The notes: a model not told the origin generated them from the letters alone. DNA of 64,000 nucleotides from Bigelowiella natans CCMP2755 (GCA_000320545.1 ADNK01001328.1:1-64000); one strand, 5' to 3'. Positions 1,047 through 10,260 are shown, counted from the stretch's first letter. Numbers and translations are program-made.

Positions 1047-3408
1047 ATGGATGCTTTGTATATGTTGGTGGGTTTGCTGAGCCTCACCGCACTGAGAGAG
1101 AAGGCCTGTGGCGATCGTCCAAGAGTTACAAATCATATCTGGTTTGGCTCCTCCAGGGTGGGGCTGGCAGACGAGTTCAGTGGTACAGAAGTAAATCTTC
1201 TGATGGTCATGTCGCAAGGTCGTAATCATCTTTGTTTTGCGAGTTTTGTGTTTCTAATGTTCATGTCGCAAGGTGGCAATCTACTGTGTTTTGCGGGTTT
1301 TTGTGTTTTCCTAGACTCTACGAACAACATGGTACCTATTTGAAGCTACGGCAACGAGAAGAGGAGAGAAGAAAAAAGGAGCACAATGATGTTTCCTCAG
1401 CAGCGGAAAGTAGCAAAGCGACAATAAATTATGGAGTATTACAGGATGAAATCGAGGCGATTTCTTCCAGAAGCAGAGCAGCAGCATGAATGTATGTGAA
1501 TAAATGAGAATGACTTCGATGACAATGGTGTACCACGATGAGAGCACACACCGTCCACAATGCAACGGGAACAAGAGGGAACAAATGAAGATGATCACGG
1601 ATTCTAACTCCCACTCTCTTACTAAAACACTAAACACTACTCGGGACTTCGCCCTGCGCCTTGATGACGATCTTAAAAAGCTTGAGACTAATCTGCAGCG
1701 GCTGGAAGACATCGAAGAGGAAGAATCCAAGCGGCTTAAGATCCTCGAGGAAAAGATGGCGACTCTCATCGAAGAAAATCAGGTGAGCAAGCATTGACTG
1801 TTTTGAAAGAAGAGTAGTTTTTCTATGCTTATGGTTACAGCTTTCATCTAAAGTCTTCGGCCCCTCTCTCTTTCCGTCGCGCCTCCTTTGACTACACAAC
1901 GTTTGTTCGTTAGATGCTGGAACAGGAAGACCTGCGATTTCGAAGCATAGTGAACCATTTCAGAGAGGTAGCAGTCTCAAAGATCAAGAATCACCGAGAG
2001 ATTAATGGGTCATGCTTCGGACCAGATCTTGCTAACGTGAAGAAGGTGAAATGTCAGCACGTCTACTCGGAACAACTTACTGTGCAACCTGTGGCAGTGG
2101 TGGTGAATGTAGGAGAGGTCTTCCGAACTGAGATTCTTCCCAGTAAAAATGAACGAGTTTCCATTCTAAATTTCATTTTGAGGCAAATCTGGATTGACAT
2201 AGGCATCATTGACGCACAAATTACTTACTACTCTCCTGATTCCTGACAACATTCTTCGTATCTATGATGAACATGATGTCGTAGGTGGTTAAGTTACCAC
2301 ACATGTCTCGATGGAACGTCCATTTGCTCGTCGTTTGGTTGCAACAGGTGTTTGAAAGATCGTCAATGAGAAATAGAAGCCCTCGTTCTTTGAGGAAATA
2401 TAGAGTCTGAATTCTTCCTCCTCATCTAGCACTACCCATAACGTGTTATCACTATCCCAGATGGAAGAATACAGTACCGAACTTACCAGAAGAATTCTTG
2501 AGAGGTGTAGCTCAGTGATGCAAAATACAGCTTCTTTATGTCTTTCTTTCTTTCTTTCTTTCTTGTTGCTGTTGAAACAGAGGCTAAGCAGTCTGTTTCG
2601 TTATTATTGTTATTTTTATTATTATTATTATTACTACTACTACTATTGTTACTATCTTTGTTATTTGTGTGCTACTACTACTACAACTACTGCTACTACT
2701 TTCGCTACTGCTACAGTTCCATATCAGGACAAAAGCTACTTAGCATTGTATCGTGCGGTGATCAGAGTCATTGCATCAATAATCTCGTGGAAAATCTGAA
2801 ATGCACAAGGTAATGAGGTTTATAACTTCACTATGTGTTTACTCTTTCTGTTGCATGGTCGGCAAGTAAGTAAGTTAACATGAAATATATGCTCAAAGTA
2901 TTTAATAGCAGTGTGTAGGTTTTTCACAGAGCAAAGCCACAAATGCTGTCGATACTCAATACCTCCATTTGCCTCTTTCTTGGTCACATCAGAGAACAAG
3001 CAGTTTTTGTCAAAAAAAAGGTTTTGGAGTATCTCTGCGGAGATGATGTCAATCGTCCGCAAGCCACAAGACGACCTGAGTAAGTTTTGAAGTATATTTA
3101 TAAAAATTTGCACATACATAAACACACAGTTCCACATAAATCCTCATCCGGGTGTTATGGATTTATTCATATCATTAATTATTGTGTGTATGCTTGCCAT
3201 TAAGGGTATAATAATGCACATGACACATGCAAACATATCCACTGCTACCTCGCTTATTAGTCTGTCACTCTCCCACCACTCACTCGTCGAAACATACCCC
3301 AATACTGCTCATAAGCATTAAATACATACCACCAGGTTTTTTTATTACATTTCGCTACTTTTTAGGTTTTCTCATCGACGAAGTGTTTATCTTTTTATCA
3401 TCATCATT

Positions 3409-3440
<32 letters not shown>

Positions 3441-4377
3441 TATCATCATGGCCGTTATCCTCCTTCACTTCCTCCTTTTTCTTTTTTCAGGTGGTATATT
3501 GAGATCGACGAGGAATCCGTACTGAGCGTCGTTGGAAATGTGGCAGTTGATACGCTATCGTTCAACACAAGTAATCTAGATCAGGCAATCCAGCAGCAGC
3601 AGCAGCAGCAGCAACAACAACAACAAAAGCAGCAGCAACTCCGTAAAACAATGGCAACAACAGATGATAAGCAGCGAAATGAAGAACATCAAGCAGCTGC
3701 CAGCACCAGTATCGTCACACAAACGAGGATGAATGCGAAGGAAGAGTATGTCCGTAGCCGTCTTCCGAATGCGTATTGGCTGTACGCAATCGAAGTGATG
3801 ATGACGGTGATACCTCCTTCAAGCATCACAAACACCACAAATATCTGTGATAGCATTAAGAAGACTGATAGGGAGGGAAATAGAGTAGCAACAACAACAA
3901 CAACAATAATAACAACAACAACAACCACGAAGCTGAGAGTACAACTATCATCACAGCATCAGCAAAAAGAGGAGGAGGATGGTGAAAAGGTGGACAAAGA
4001 AGTGTGTAAAGAACCGTGCAGGTGTTATTAGAGATGTTTATTTTCCTATACCAACTATAACCCATTGGGTTTATAAACTAGTACATCGATAATGTGTTGA
4101 ATTAGATCATTATAGATGAGAAAGTATCATCGATGGTGACATGTCCAGCTCCTGTCATTGCTACTAATTCCATCAATTGTTTGCCCCCCTCCTTATTTTG
4201 GTTTTGATCAGCTATCACACACACACACATACACACACACACACACACACACAAACACTTACTTGATAGATGGGGGATATTAGTGGAGTCTAAGCTGCCA
4301 GTTGACCAATTCCCACCGATACGAGTCTTCCTGAAGGATCAAATACAGGTACTAGTGCGTGCCCTATAGTAGTAGTG

Positions 4378-4414
<37 letters not shown>

Positions 4415-5558
4415 TAGACAAGCTTGAATTTACTATTGGCATTCTTTGGTAGGCCTCCTACGCACGTTTTGTGTACATAGGGCCAATCGTTTTGGATTCT
4501 TCTCCCTACCCAGATCACAATGATGACAACGATGATGACGATGATGATGATGAAGATGATGATGGAGATGATGATGGAGAGATCAGAAAGGACACCAAAC
4601 AAATAGAGTATCATTCTGACGACGCAAGCATAAATGATGATGATGATGATAATGAGGAGCATAGTGCATTCCATTCGTCCTCCCAGAGGATCATCATTCG
4701 GAAGAATTTGATACTTTTGAATCATCATCATAATCTTCTGCGTCTCGTCACGGAGTGTAAGGAATTGGTACTTTGTTAGTAGCGATGAGCAACGATAGCA
4801 AATGATAAATAGATAGATAGGTGGATCAATTTCTGATAATGATGATGATGATGTGTGTGTGATGATAGATGTAATAGTAGCGTATACTTGTCCAGGTGTA
4901 TTTGGGAAATAACAATGTAGTAAGTTGCTTATTCTGATCCTGCCCCCCCTCCCTTCTTCTTCTTCTTCTTCTTCTTCTTCTTCTTCTTCTTCTTCTTCTC
5001 CAAAATGGTGTTTTTACAGCCACAGGTGGTTGCACAATCAAGCAGTGCTTCTCCCTCCTTCTCATCAACAAATAATCACGGCATTCGTGATCGTCATTGG
5101 TCTCCTCCTCTTCCACATCATCATCATCATCACCATCATCGTTTGGAGTACCTTGTGGTGCCTCTACGGAGTATTCCCTCCTCTTCATCCTCTTTTACTG
5201 ATGCAGAAGGAGGCGGAAATAGTGGAGAAATGATCAACGAGAAGTTAGCACCACGTGGGTATGGCATCGACTGGAAAAGGGCTAAAATTCCTTACGATGG
5301 CACTGGCGGGTAAGAAATGGTGGAAAGAATAATATATAGTGGAAAATATATTATTATCTCGGATAGAAACTGCATTAATAACAGATCACTCATAGAATAA
5401 ATTGTTTTAAAATGCACACTTGCTCTTCTATAAATCAAACATGTGAATGTACACGTGACACGTACACACATGTGGACATACAAACACATAATATTACAAA
5501 TTTGAAAATTATTATTACTCACACAAACGATTAGGCCCCCACATCGTCCTCATCGTCG

Positions 5559-5596
<38 letters not shown>

Positions 5597-6037
5597 TTGC
5601 CCTTAAATCATCATCTTTCAATCAGAGATCCTGCCGATTTGAAGCTGCTGCGTGAGTCACCTTCACAGTATATTCTCTTACGAAATGGAAAGTCGTATCT
5701 CTGTGCTGGTGTACCTGGACATATACGTGGAGGCTCGTACATCCCGTTGAAGAAGAAGAAGGAAAACTACTGCAGGGGAGAAACGTTCCAGCAGTACTAC
5801 TTCAGAAAGGTAAATCATATTTAGTGGCGACGAGGAGGAATATAATACTATGGGAGAGAAACTGCACCTTATTATTCTTCTTCTTCTTCTTCTTCTTCTT
5901 CTCATTATTCTTCTTGAATTGCCTCCTCCGTATCATCATCATTAGTATAAATTGCGGATCCAACATGATGAGCCACTTGTAGAAGTTTATCCGCTTTTTA
6001 AGCCAAAAAGGTGGAGAAGAGGATAGGCGTAGCAGCG

Positions 6038-6077
<40 letters not shown>

Positions 6078-6572
6078 AAGAAGAAGAAGAAGAAGAAACT
6101 TAGGTTGAGCAACGTACGTCTTCTCATCATACAAGCAAACACACACACACATACACACACATCACTAACTTAGGTCGGCGCTACGTCCCTATGTATCTGC
6201 TGAAGGCTATGTCAATCAATTCGTTCCTGTGCAGCAGCTACGAGTGTATCACACTGATTTTAGGAGGGTTGGAAGGCTTGTTTCCATATTGTATCGATTA
6301 GACAACTTGATGGTCGCACATAATCTTGCCATGCAGATAGGGCTGCCAAGGACAAGCAACGTAATGTCTCGTCTTGTCTCAACCTTTCGTCATCATCATC
6401 AGCACCAGCAGCTGCATCAGCAGTGTCATTGTTGTTATTGTTGACATGTGTCGCTTTCTGACCGGCACCAATATCATGCAACACGCATATTTTTGTTGTA
6501 ACTCAGCTTGATCTAATCCGCCAGGCCCTCACCCACAAGTAGTATTATAGGATATTTTAGTAGTGGCGGTAC

Positions 6573-6607
<35 letters not shown>

Positions 6608-7083
6608 GTATGGTAATGTTGCCACGGGATAGAGATGATGCTTGGAATTATTACTTTGCTGTTTGTGGGAAGTTGAGTTATCAGCGGTAGGAACTACAAA
6701 GGAGAGAAACTAAGTGAGAAGGAAGAGAAATCCGTCAGGAAGAAGAAGAAGAAGAAGAAGAAGAAGAAGAAGAAGGAGGGGTATGGAAGGGTGTTGATAG
6801 GATATGGGCCTTAATCATATACTACTACCACTTGCACCCCTTCTCCTCCTCCTCCTCCTCCTACTGCTACTGCTACTACTACTACTACTGCTACTACACA
6901 CTTTAGGGCTGCTGATGAACAAGAGAACTATGAACGTCTAGAGCTATTAGGCGATGCTTTACTAAAGGTGACTATTGCTTATCGTCATTATTCTCATAAT
7001 CATCAATAATAAATAATAACAATCTTGCTTCTACGTCAGTTTAATATCTCTCTACGGCTGCTAGACACCAAGCTAGAGTCTTT

Positions 7084-7115
<32 letters not shown>

Positions 7116-7209
7116 TGTCGTCGCCCTCTCCCTCTGCTTGTATTTTCTCATCGTACTCTCACCACCATGATCAAATTCTCTCGTCATTCTCGTGTTCAGT
7201 ATCCCCATT

Positions 7210-7241
<32 letters not shown>

Positions 7242-7664
7242 TCTTATCATTGGAGGGTCTAAGAGCGAATTTGGAGTCAAACGAAGCTTTCTGCAACGTT
7301 GCGCTGCAATACAATTTGCACAAGTCAGAAGAGGAAGAGGAGGATGATAGATGATGATAACAAAAAAGGAAGAAGGGAGAGAGGGGGAGAGAGGGGGAGA
7401 AAGAAGAATTATTGTATAATCTCCAACACTCCTGTTTTGATGGGTTCTTTTAAAAGGTATTCATGAATGAATGTATATAGTCTGACAATATTTCTCACTA
7501 AAAAATAGTGTGATAGTACTTCAACGAAGTTTTCGCATGATCTCGATATATTCTTGTTTTCTTCCTTTCCACATTCTGCTGCATTGACTAGAAGAGTTCT
7601 ACATCTCCTTCTCCTCCTCTTCATCTTTGCTGCTTTACTGACTTCCTTGCTCTATGGGTTGCAT

Positions 7665-7701
<37 letters not shown>

Positions 7702-9602
7702 TTTACCACCTTTAGGTATGCCATATACAAGCCGTTTCAACCGCATTACTATTGCTTGCCGCATTTTATCCCACACGATTCTAGCAATGCTGCTGCTAAT
7801 CACAAGATGCCAGAGAAGCTTCCCCCTGATATTGTGGAGTCTATTACAGTTAATGAAGTTTATATATTGTCCTATGTGTGCTTTTGTGTGTGTGTCTCTC
7901 TCCCCCCCCCCTCTCTCGGTGTCTGTGCCTCTGTGTGCATGAGAAGGAAACGGAAAGAAAATAGAAGGGAGACATCAACCTTTCCGACATTTCGTACTCC
8001 CTAATATATACTAATATATACTGCGTCTTATTTGTCTAACACTTCTCTCTCTCCCTCTCTCCCTCCCTCCCATATTTCTGCTGCTGATGATCATGCATAC
8101 TGGTGTTGGTAGGGGGCATGCTTTATAGAAAAGGACTATTTCTACGCCTTATCATTTCTACGGTATCTGAATATGCCTATAGCCAGATGCTGCCTCACAT
8201 TCAACTGTGAGTCAATATACTCAGCAATTCTCTCAAAAGAAGGAGTAGCTACGAGTAATCAAGGTGAAAAATGGGAAAAGGATGGAGAAAGGAAGGTGGC
8301 ACATCCTTCTAGAAGCAGTGAATGGAAACTACAAGAAAGAGAACTGGGCTATGAATTTCTCAATCCAACGCTACTAGGTATTGCGCTGCGGCTGAGGGGG
8401 AAAGCAGTAAATGTTAAGATCAAAGAAGAGGAAGAAGATGATAGGGAGGAAGAGGAAAGTAACGAAGAAGAAAGCGAGGATGAAGAGATCTTGCAAGAGG
8501 TTACCATTCATTCATTCATTCATTCACATGCATTTTCCAAATTTATGCAGGTATACTACCAAACAAATATGATAAGATGATGAAGTACGACTTCCTTATT
8601 TACATATTATGTTTTTGTTGTCATAGTCCACTCTTCCTACACAATTCTTGCAATGGTTTCCACGTTGTTGTTGTTGTTGTGTTGATGATGATGATAATGA
8701 TGATGGTGTTATTATCGTCATCTTAGGACGACGGTAGCTCACCACTGCCATCTGCGGAAGACTTGTGGTTCCTCGGTGACACGGTTGTTTGATCATGCAT
8801 TACTGCTGCATGTATACCCCGCATGGAAGAAAAAGAGTTGTTGTTGTTGTTGTTGTTGTAGTTGCTAGTTGCTAGTTGCTAGTTACTAAGATGATTCGAT
8901 AAAACATATCTGGTTTGTCAAAATCAAAAAGGCACCGCGTTAGATGTAATCATTACAGATTCTTACAATCATTTCGCCTTCTCCTCATAGAATCTTTGTC
9001 TGCGTCTCCCCATACACTTCTTCTTTCCTCGTTTACCCCATCTATCTATCAAGATTGTCCGGTTGGCAATGTTAGCATACTTTCACCGTGCATACCCCTA
9101 TCTGGAAGAAAATCAGATAAATGAGAAGCTGAAGGACAATTTACATATATCAAGATTGATGGATTGGTTCTTTACCTCTAGTCTCACCTCACACTTCTTT
9201 TTCGAGGTGAACCACAAACAGCAGCAGCGACGTAGTAAACAGCAGCAGCAGCAACAACAACAACAACTGGGTCATCATTCTCGACGTTATCGTCATACGA
9301 AGCTTCTCCTAGAGCTTTGTAGAATATGGAAGAAGGGTAAGCAACAAGCAGAGGAAAAGTCAGTAAGGAGAAACAACGACAACGACATTTGCCAATACTA
9401 CTATATGAAATATATGGAAGAACAACTCGTAGGGACTAACTACTTTAAAGAGGCAACAAATATAATCAAAGGATGCTTCAAGAGCATCATTGCAGCCGTT
9501 TTCCTTGATAGCAATCGCAACTTTATAACAGCGTGCAGGGTATATGCCAAGCTCACTAAATCTTCTCATATTACCATAAATTCTTGTGAAAATGAAAATT
9601 AA
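1047..9602 (+). CDS. DCL: Dicer-like ribonuclease: N-terminal coiled-coil extension, platform, PAZ, connector helix, RNase IIIa, degenerate RNase IIIb; no recognisable helicase or dsRBD (core 3491-9602 secure; 5' part and start tentative)
   Basis: Spliced exons give platform motifs YWLYAIEV...CRWGILVESKLP...FPPIRVF and YLVVPL...IDW; PAZ ETFQQYYFRK|YKLRIQHDEPLVEV; connector LVSILYRLDNLMVAHNL; IIIa LIRQALTHK|...ENYERLELLGDALLK (6907-6967), LESNEAFCNVALQYNLHK and KLPPDIVESIT|GACF; IIIb LGYEFLNPTLL, AEDLWFLGDT|IVRLAMLAYFHRAYPYL and IKGCFKSIIAAVFLDS; stop at 9600-9602. Motif order is collinear with canonical Dicer. Confidence 0.92.
1196..1310. repeat. Imperfect tandem duplication (~55-bp unit x2) in an intron
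   Basis: tcatgtcgcaaggt...tgttttgcg..ttttgtgttt occurs twice (about 1207 and 1261). Confidence 0.7.
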
Positions 9603-9719
9603 TTTTTCGGATGACAAGATAGCATGTTTTGATCAGTTTTTGAAGAAAATCATCGAGAGGCGAGGGCTTAGTACATCGTCACTACTGTGAGCTGCACAAT
9701 CGTTTTTTGTCCCTTAAAA

Positions 9720-10260
9720 TCACGATGTGCATGTAATGATGACAAAATTGTCATGGCTGCTAATTGTGGTGGTATGCCATGCTAGCATGCTAGCATGTGC
9801 TGACATCCAATTGTCCCCGCACAAGTGCACAGCATTGGCCATGCTAGCATGATGTGCGAAGCGATGCTGTAGCGAGCTGCGAGTGAAAAAAATGGTGCCT
9901 CCAATCTAGCAATGCACACTAACTGCTAAATGCAGCTCTAGAGCTGGACATCTAGATTTGTCTGGACATCGATCTGCAACTGACCATTGGTCCTTCTTGC
10001 ATTCATGCATTCTAGCATTGCTAGATGCTGCGTGACCCAGCCGGTGCTAGCTAGCTAGCTAGAGTGCGACAGCAACTCGTTCTAGTCGTTGTATGCACAT
10101 GCTTTCACATCGCATGTCACGTTCTAGCGTTGTCTACAATTGTGATGTTTACTAGCTCTCTGTAGTGCACTCTAGCAATCTAGCAATGTATGTGTGCTTG
10201 ACCCTAACTAGCTAATTCTATATCGCCACATTGTATGCACATGCAGGTACACAAACTAGA
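9720..10260. other. Palindromic-word-rich non-coding tract at convergent junction 1 (Dicer / RhoGAP-Costars)
   Basis: About 19 CTAG by eye in ~540 bp (roughly 2 expected), plus many GCATGC/TGCA/AGCT; no credible ORF. Confidence 0.75.

Follow-up and report, generated by a model that had tools for sequence, protein, structure and literature searches.

What does a Dicer-like protein do when one of its two RNase III domains has lost its catalytic residues and is still retained? This question is raised by a gene of the chlorarachniophyte Bigelowiella natans CCMP2755, located in a stretch of 64,000 nucleotides (GCA_000320545.1 ADNK01001328.1:1-64000; hereafter the window, from whose first letter all positions are counted), for which a first-pass annotation had proposed a Dicer with an intact first (RNase IIIa) and a catalytically erased second RNase III domain (RNase IIIb). 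Our analysis demonstrates that the gene is Dicer-like, single-copy and expressed, and that an intact-looking RNase IIIa and an inactive RNase IIIb are maintained as a pair in one polypeptide. That the two domains form an enzyme-pseudoenzyme pair in one chain, which would nick one strand of double-stranded RNA (dsRNA), is the reading we consider the most likely, with about an even chance of being correct.

By direct reading of the window, RNase IIIa carries the signature ERLELLGD at 6932-6955 and, within the motif DIVES, an aspartate at 7828-7830 and a glutamate at 7837-7839; all four metal-binding carboxylates are kept, both in this gene and in the orthologue described below. The RNase IIIb signature reads EDLWFLGD (8757-8780), in which the tryptophan is encoded by TGG at 8766-8768, and the C-terminal motif KGCFKS contains a glycine (GGA, 9471-9473) and a lysine (AAG, 9480-9482). 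Here, one of the four carboxylates remains, the last aspartate of the signature, along with the signature glycine of FLGD. The positions that the first-pass annotation had given for the RNase IIIa motifs, for EDLWFLGD with its tryptophan, and for the glycine at 9471 and the lysine at 9480 are thus all confirmed. Its proposal that tryptophan, glycine and lysine occupy catalytic carboxylate positions is borne out by alignment with an intact paralogue from the same genome and by the coverage of the PF00636 profile: a BLASTP alignment of the last exon to RNase IIIb of the paralogue (E = 6e-6) places the glycine opposite the catalytic aspartate and the lysine opposite the catalytic glutamate, and the two signatures align in register with the tryptophan opposite glutamate. 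The exon with the RNase IIIa signature aligns to both signatures of the paralogue (BLASTP, E = 2e-6 and 7e-5), and an alignment of five rows, one of them P0006, a canonical but distant Dicer-like protein, yields the same mapping of all three residues, as well as a glycine-to-alanine change immediately after the lysine. RNase IIIb is, by its motifs, clearly non-catalytic, with three of four carboxylates replaced by tryptophan, glycine and lysine. An alternative exon with an intact RNase IIIb, which the first-pass annotation had named as a possible counter-explanation, was not found, as a regular-expression search through the six reading frames of the whole window returned only the two known signature motifs.

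Four public RNA runs were compared over 3850-9750, three of which (X1, X3 and X6, from three studies) are transcript assemblies. Nine GT..AG joints on the + strand are present in the transcript contigs of these three runs. The exon chain derived from the joints extends from 4270-4348 to 9054-9602, and the gene is composed as follows:

3491-3806, 3957-4021, 4270-4348, 4453-4767, 5020-5309, 5626-5809, 5946-6010 and 6174-6360, + strand: upstream exons; GT..AG joints in X1, X3 and X6
6507-6538, + strand: exon with the lead of RNase IIIa (LDLIRQALTHK); joint 6360>6507, 32-letter side; matches the orthologue L009
6907-6967, + strand: exon with the intact RNase IIIa signature ERLELLGD; PF14622 at 17 bits, BLASTP to the paralogue signatures; motif identical in the orthologue
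7040-7323, + strand: exon with the middle of RNase IIIa and a serine-rich low-complexity insertion; joint 6967>7040 in X1, X3 and X6; chain open in L009
7716-7848, + strand: exon with the catalytic aspartate and glutamate of RNase IIIa (DIVES); joint 7848>8113 found in three runs; the orthologue conserves the codons
8113-8499, + strand: exon with the end of RNase IIIa (GACFIEKD), the linker, the lead of RNase IIIb (ELGYEFLNPTLL) and an acidic insertion; contiguous in X3 and X6, and in P0005
8727-8783, + strand: 57-nt exon with the degenerate RNase IIIb signature EDLWFLGD; contigs of X3 and X6, and in P0005; tryptophan codon the same in the orthologue
9054-9602, + strand: last exon with the remainder of RNase IIIb, the glycine at 9471, the lysine at 9480 and the stop codon TAA (9600-9602); PF00636, BLASTP to RNase IIIb of the paralogue; 71% identity to the orthologue
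9603-9736, + strand: 3' untranslated region to the poly(A) addition site; in X1, a loose end of 22 A after 9736

The splices 8499>8727 and 8783>9054, which the first-pass annotation had predicted around the degenerate signature, are both present in contigs of independent studies and in P0005, and in X3 and X6 a 58-letter side that lies between 8497/8499 and 9053/9054 represents the 57-nt exon. Letter differences were not reported for the transcript contigs, and the tryptophan, glycine and lysine codons are therefore identical in the RNA. It is the splice sites and the poly(A) tail that place the gene on the + strand, as the reads of the fourth run (X22) alone do not settle the strand. A genome search of the 91.4-Mb assembly identified a single copy of the gene.

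Several further observations were made on the gene and its transcripts. An 82-nt frameshifting intron (8293>8376) inside exon 8113-8499 occurs in one contig of X1 only, and an in-frame skip (6967>7256), which would drop 7040-7255 and hence part of RNase IIIa, is indicated by one loose end of X6 only. Contigs with retained introns, with 6331-6536, 7405-7656 and 8754-9082 among the minor-form regions, occur at depths similar to those of the spliced contigs. At 3807-3956, loose ends of X1 and X3 point to a 150-nt in-frame intron, the removal of which eliminates a threonine-rich low-complexity stretch that, if unspliced, would be read through as coding sequence. Within 3400-9050, nearly all introns contain tri- or dinucleotide microsatellites (CAT, CTT, TAC, GTA, CA, TA), and the exons encode homopolymer runs (glutamine, serine, histidine, aspartate/glutamate, threonine); the serine-rich run in exon 7040-7323 is a break point of the transcript assemblies in both species. 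Finally, the codon at 9585-9587 encodes cysteine (NSCENEN) in the window and serine in P0001 and P0005, which is probably a strain or allele difference.

The window was searched exon by exon, and the joined product was examined through public transcript-derived proteins. A HMMER search with the last exon against 1.84 billion representatives gave two relevant matches, P0001, an MMETSP transcript open reading frame (ORF) with 99% identity to the exon, and P0002, a protein of 465 amino acids with 71% identity. A cluster look-up further provided P0005, a transcript-derived product of 392 amino acids from the same gene, the exon joints of which, including 7848>8113, are those of the contigs. Single exons reach only 16-17 bits against RNase III profiles. 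P0005 scores 49 bits against PF00636 (cut-off 27; E = 1.1e-12), and RNase IIIb spans profile positions 1-101; the identity of RNase IIIb as an RNase III domain is therefore far beyond chance. The two tandem RNase III domains reside in one polypeptide, being joined in the transcripts, in P0005 and in the orthologue.

This orthologue, P0002, is encoded by L009, a transcript contig of 1,781 nt from a related organism with a frame that is open from nt 2 to 1750 (583 amino acids). The ORF (L009:2-1750) scores 59.7 bits against PF00636 and 41.6 bits against PF14622 (cut-off 35), and it encodes a complete RNase IIIa, with ERLELLGD, the same serine-rich insertion exon and DIVES, followed by an RNase IIIb with the same tryptophan, glycine and lysine. 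Nonsynonymous to synonymous substitution ratios (dN/dS) were determined by the Nei-Gojobori method exon by exon against the orthologue, and the counts were summed. Over all 362 aligned codons dN/dS is 0.20 (dS 0.80, p < 1e-11). The most constrained region is the C-terminal part of RNase IIIa (0.056); RNase IIIb as a whole has a ratio of 0.22, which separates into 0.12 for the core helices (105 codons, Fisher p about 1e-12) and 0.33 for the internal insertion. Between the two species there are synonymous differences in the codons of the substituted glycine (GGA vs GGG) and of the retained aspartate (GAC vs GAT), and the RNase IIIb substitutions are therefore older than the species split and the dead domain is under selection. 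Both points that the first-pass annotation had suggested checking, whether relatives share the three substitutions and whether RNase IIIb evolves under purifying selection, hold in one related species, and the maintained pseudo-catalytic domain it had proposed is supported by an expressed, spliced open frame, by the common tryptophan, glycine and lysine at a dS of about 0.8, and by the conserved RNase IIIb core and RNase IIIa carboxylates. The family is very narrow: two large protein collections yielded this gene and one orthologue only, and homology searches with P0005 and the orthologue ORF recovered only P0002 and the distant canonical Dicer-like protein P0006.

These expression and conservation data lead us to reject the view that the gene is a decaying pseudogene or that a faulty gene model hides an intact RNase IIIb exon. 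Such a view, which we regard as very improbable, could draw on the weak exon-wise RNase III matches of 16-17 bits and on the minor isoforms with retained introns or a frameshift. It is countered by spliced, polyadenylated transcripts with the predicted junctions in three studies, by a frame that is open in two species with an overall dN/dS of 0.20, and by the motif scan of the window and the genome search, which revealed neither another signature motif nor a second genomic copy. The combination of missing expression and relaxed selection, by which the first-pass annotation would have recognised a pseudogene, is thus not what was found.

As to other Dicers in the genome, for which the first-pass annotation had suggested looking, there is one second Dicer-like gene, L001 (C1128:61513-64941, ORFs 4-2367 and 2443-2904), which is nearly intronless, scores 65 bits against PF00636 and resembles the window gene at the motif level only. 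Both of its RNase III domains are catalytically complete by sequence (WEQLEFLGD with SDSAEAL, and YEALEKLGD with ADMFEAF). A eukaryotic-type RNA-dependent RNA polymerase (RdRP) was identified on C1073:100226-103281 (43 bits). A weak PF00636 match on C2141 was rejected, as it does not resemble RNase III.

How might a Dicer-like protein with one active-looking site operate? In a Dicer, the two strands are divided between the RNase III domains, with the 3' arm being cut by RNase IIIa in canonical Dicers, and a lysine at the last carboxylate position, as in E. coli E117K and Aquifex E110K, leaves RNA bound and uncleaved. It might be hypothesized that RNase IIIb of the algal protein still pairs with RNase IIIa and forms the valley that binds dsRNA, while its own strand would be left unhydrolysed. 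Only the strand that faces RNase IIIa would then be cut in a binding event, and this would yield duplexes or hairpins with a nick together with small RNAs from one strand only; ordinary double-strand dicing would be supplied by the intact paralogue on C1128. Nicking by such a protein may reasonably be inferred from human DICER1 RNase IIIb mutants and from the RNase III pairs of trypanosome editosomes. In the former, RNase IIIa cuts the 3p arm only and nicked precursors remain (PMC12700799). In the latter, an active RNase III is combined with a conserved dead one, an arrangement proposed to allow cutting of the mRNA while the guide RNA is spared, and engineered E. coli RNase III heterodimers likewise nick one strand (PMC5648035).

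A number of results weigh against the proposed nicking pair. The argument for it proceeds by analogy only, and the constraint on RNase IIIb is weaker than that on RNase IIIa. X22, the only run of raw reads, contributes 16 reads, most of them partial, from the 3' end of the gene, which indicates low expression at best. The domains that accompany RNase III in other Dicers were sought as well. The region 5626-6360 is PAZ- or connector-like by eye only, and no match to a PAZ domain, from which the cut would be measured according to the first-pass annotation, was obtained there in exon-by-exon Pfam searches, a genome-wide search with PF02170, phmmer against the PDB, the ESM Atlas or a comparison with the paralogue; for the PAZ-like exon, the ESM Atlas gave sub-threshold lectin-like matches only and a metagenome scan found zero relatives, and nothing relevant was returned from the PDB when the last exon, P0005 or the PAZ-like exons served as sequence queries. 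No helicase family was found in the upstream ORFs or exons of this contig, which begins at window position 1 and leaves the 5' end of the gene undefined. Similarly, there is no dsRNA-binding domain (dsRBD), the protein ending about 40 residues past the RNase IIIb motif and P0005 having no dsrm match. AlphaFold2 modelling on shallow alignments gave no usable model, with a pLDDT of 33 for P0005 (two rows) and of 34 for the orthologue ORF (five rows). Finally, six-frame, exon-by-exon profile searches of the genome yielded zero matches to Piwi, PAZ, ArgoL1 and ArgoMid, which suggests that Argonaute is absent or very divergent; as a profile search of this kind works exon by exon, the absence is suggestive and not proof. 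The suggestion of the first-pass annotation that an Argonaute might complete the cut is weakened by this result, albeit not conclusively.

Two other explanations accept the inactive RNase IIIb and assign the protein a different activity. According to one of these, the protein cleaves no RNA at all and is a dsRNA-binding or regulatory paralogue, for instance a partner or competitor of the C1128 enzyme. This would be in line with the clearly non-catalytic RNase IIIb, with the presence of an intact paralogue in the same genome and with the conservation of inactive Dicer paralogues in Paramecium (Dcr2, Dcr3) and Tetrahymena (Dcr1) (PMC2647294). However, all four RNase IIIa carboxylates are kept in both species, and constraint is strongest in the C-terminal part of RNase IIIa (dN/dS 0.056), which one would hardly expect of a protein that could do without catalysis; we therefore consider a non-cleaving protein rather unlikely. 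Double-strand cuts might, on the other hand, persist if RNase IIIa paired between molecules, with its own copy or with another RNase III, while RNase IIIb served another structural or RNA-binding role. RNase III domains do act as dimers, as in bacterial RNase III and budding-yeast Dcr1, and the signature glycine used in dimer packing is kept in both domains. Yet the characterised two-domain enzymes, Dicer and Drosha, all pair their domains intramolecularly, and the conserved RNase IIIb core (dN/dS 0.12) fits a retained pairing partner, so that we assign pairing between molecules a similarly low probability. The single-strand nicking pair thus remains the explanation we favour, at the strength given at the outset.

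How does the algal protein compare with known systems? It resembles the minimal Dicer of the Giardia type in being short and in having two RNase III domains and neither a recognisable helicase nor a C-terminal dsRBD. In Giardia Dicer, however, the PAZ domain is proven by structure and both sites are active, whereas no PAZ domain was detected in the algal protein and only one site looks active. The closest parallel in architecture is offered by Dcl1 of Paramecium tetraurelia, in which the first RNase III domain possesses the four catalytic residues and the second does not (Lepere et al. 2009, PMC2647294). As in our case, this is a Dicer-like protein without recognisable helicase, with an intact RNase IIIa and a degenerate RNase IIIb, that is conserved as a paralogue beside a complete Dicer. 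However, the alga is a rhizarian and Paramecium a ciliate, which places the two in different supergroups, and since there is also no detectable orthology to Dcl1, RNase IIIb was presumably lost independently in the two lineages. A mechanism for the algal protein is not to be gained from Dcl1. Variant RNase IIIb motifs were further described for Phaeodactylum DCR1, Thalassiosira DCR, Trichoplax DCL2b, Naegleria DCR3 and Albugo DCL2 (Bollmann et al. 2016, PMC4791657). These Dicer-like proteins of protists and early animals resemble the algal one in that the ExxxD and/or DxxE motifs of their RNase IIIb are naturally substituted, but they represent alignment observations, several of them with a variant RNase IIIa as well, whereas in the algal gene RNase IIIa is intact and the loss in RNase IIIb is conserved and selected.

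The best model for the behaviour of the algal protein is provided by the human DICER1 hotspot mutations (E1705, D1709, D1810, E1813; PMC12700799), which affect the same metal-binding positions of RNase IIIb. These mutants, however, arise somatically in disease, in a Dicer with helicase, PAZ and dsRBD domains that processes pre-miRNAs together with Argonaute, whereas the algal protein represents a germline, selected state and is very divergent, with no detectable PAZ, helicase or dsRBD. The editosome endonucleases KREN1-3 with KREPB4/5 (PMC5648035) likewise combine an active RNase III domain with one that is conserved but non-catalytic, and RNase IIIb of the alga displays the sequence features of a KREPB4-like domain, as its catalytic residues are lost, the signature glycine is kept and purifying selection is evident. 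In the editosome, the two domains belong to two polypeptides in a large mitochondrial complex that has no link to small RNAs, whereas the algal halves reside in one chain. A literature search on Dicers of chlorarachniophytes or Bigelowiella found nothing specific. The novelty that the first-pass annotation had attached to the domain arrangement was overrated, as the combination of an intact first with a degenerate second domain is on record for other natural Dicer-like proteins (PMC2647294, PMC4791657). A degenerate second domain is thus already known in Dicers, and what is new here is the evidence on expression, on an orthologue and on selection.

Our analysis documents an RNA-silencing gene set for a chlorarachniophyte that comprises one RdRP and two Dicer-like genes and in which profile searches detected no Argonaute. 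To our knowledge, the biochemistry of a natural half-inactive Dicer has not been described so far, and what is known of such enzymes stems from mutants found in human tumours and from bacterial heterodimers that were engineered. The algal gene is a clean natural case, which could show whether evolution makes use of single-strand dicing and why a dead RNase III half is kept. It might be speculated, and we consider this doubtful at present, that the protein is a natural Dicer nickase maintained by selection, which would give rise to strand-selective small RNAs or nicked intermediates beside an RdRP and an intact Dicer-like enzyme and with no detectable Argonaute. If it is true that the protein nicks one strand, this would imply a route of small-RNA production or RNA processing in this alga that lies outside the Dicer-Argonaute scheme.

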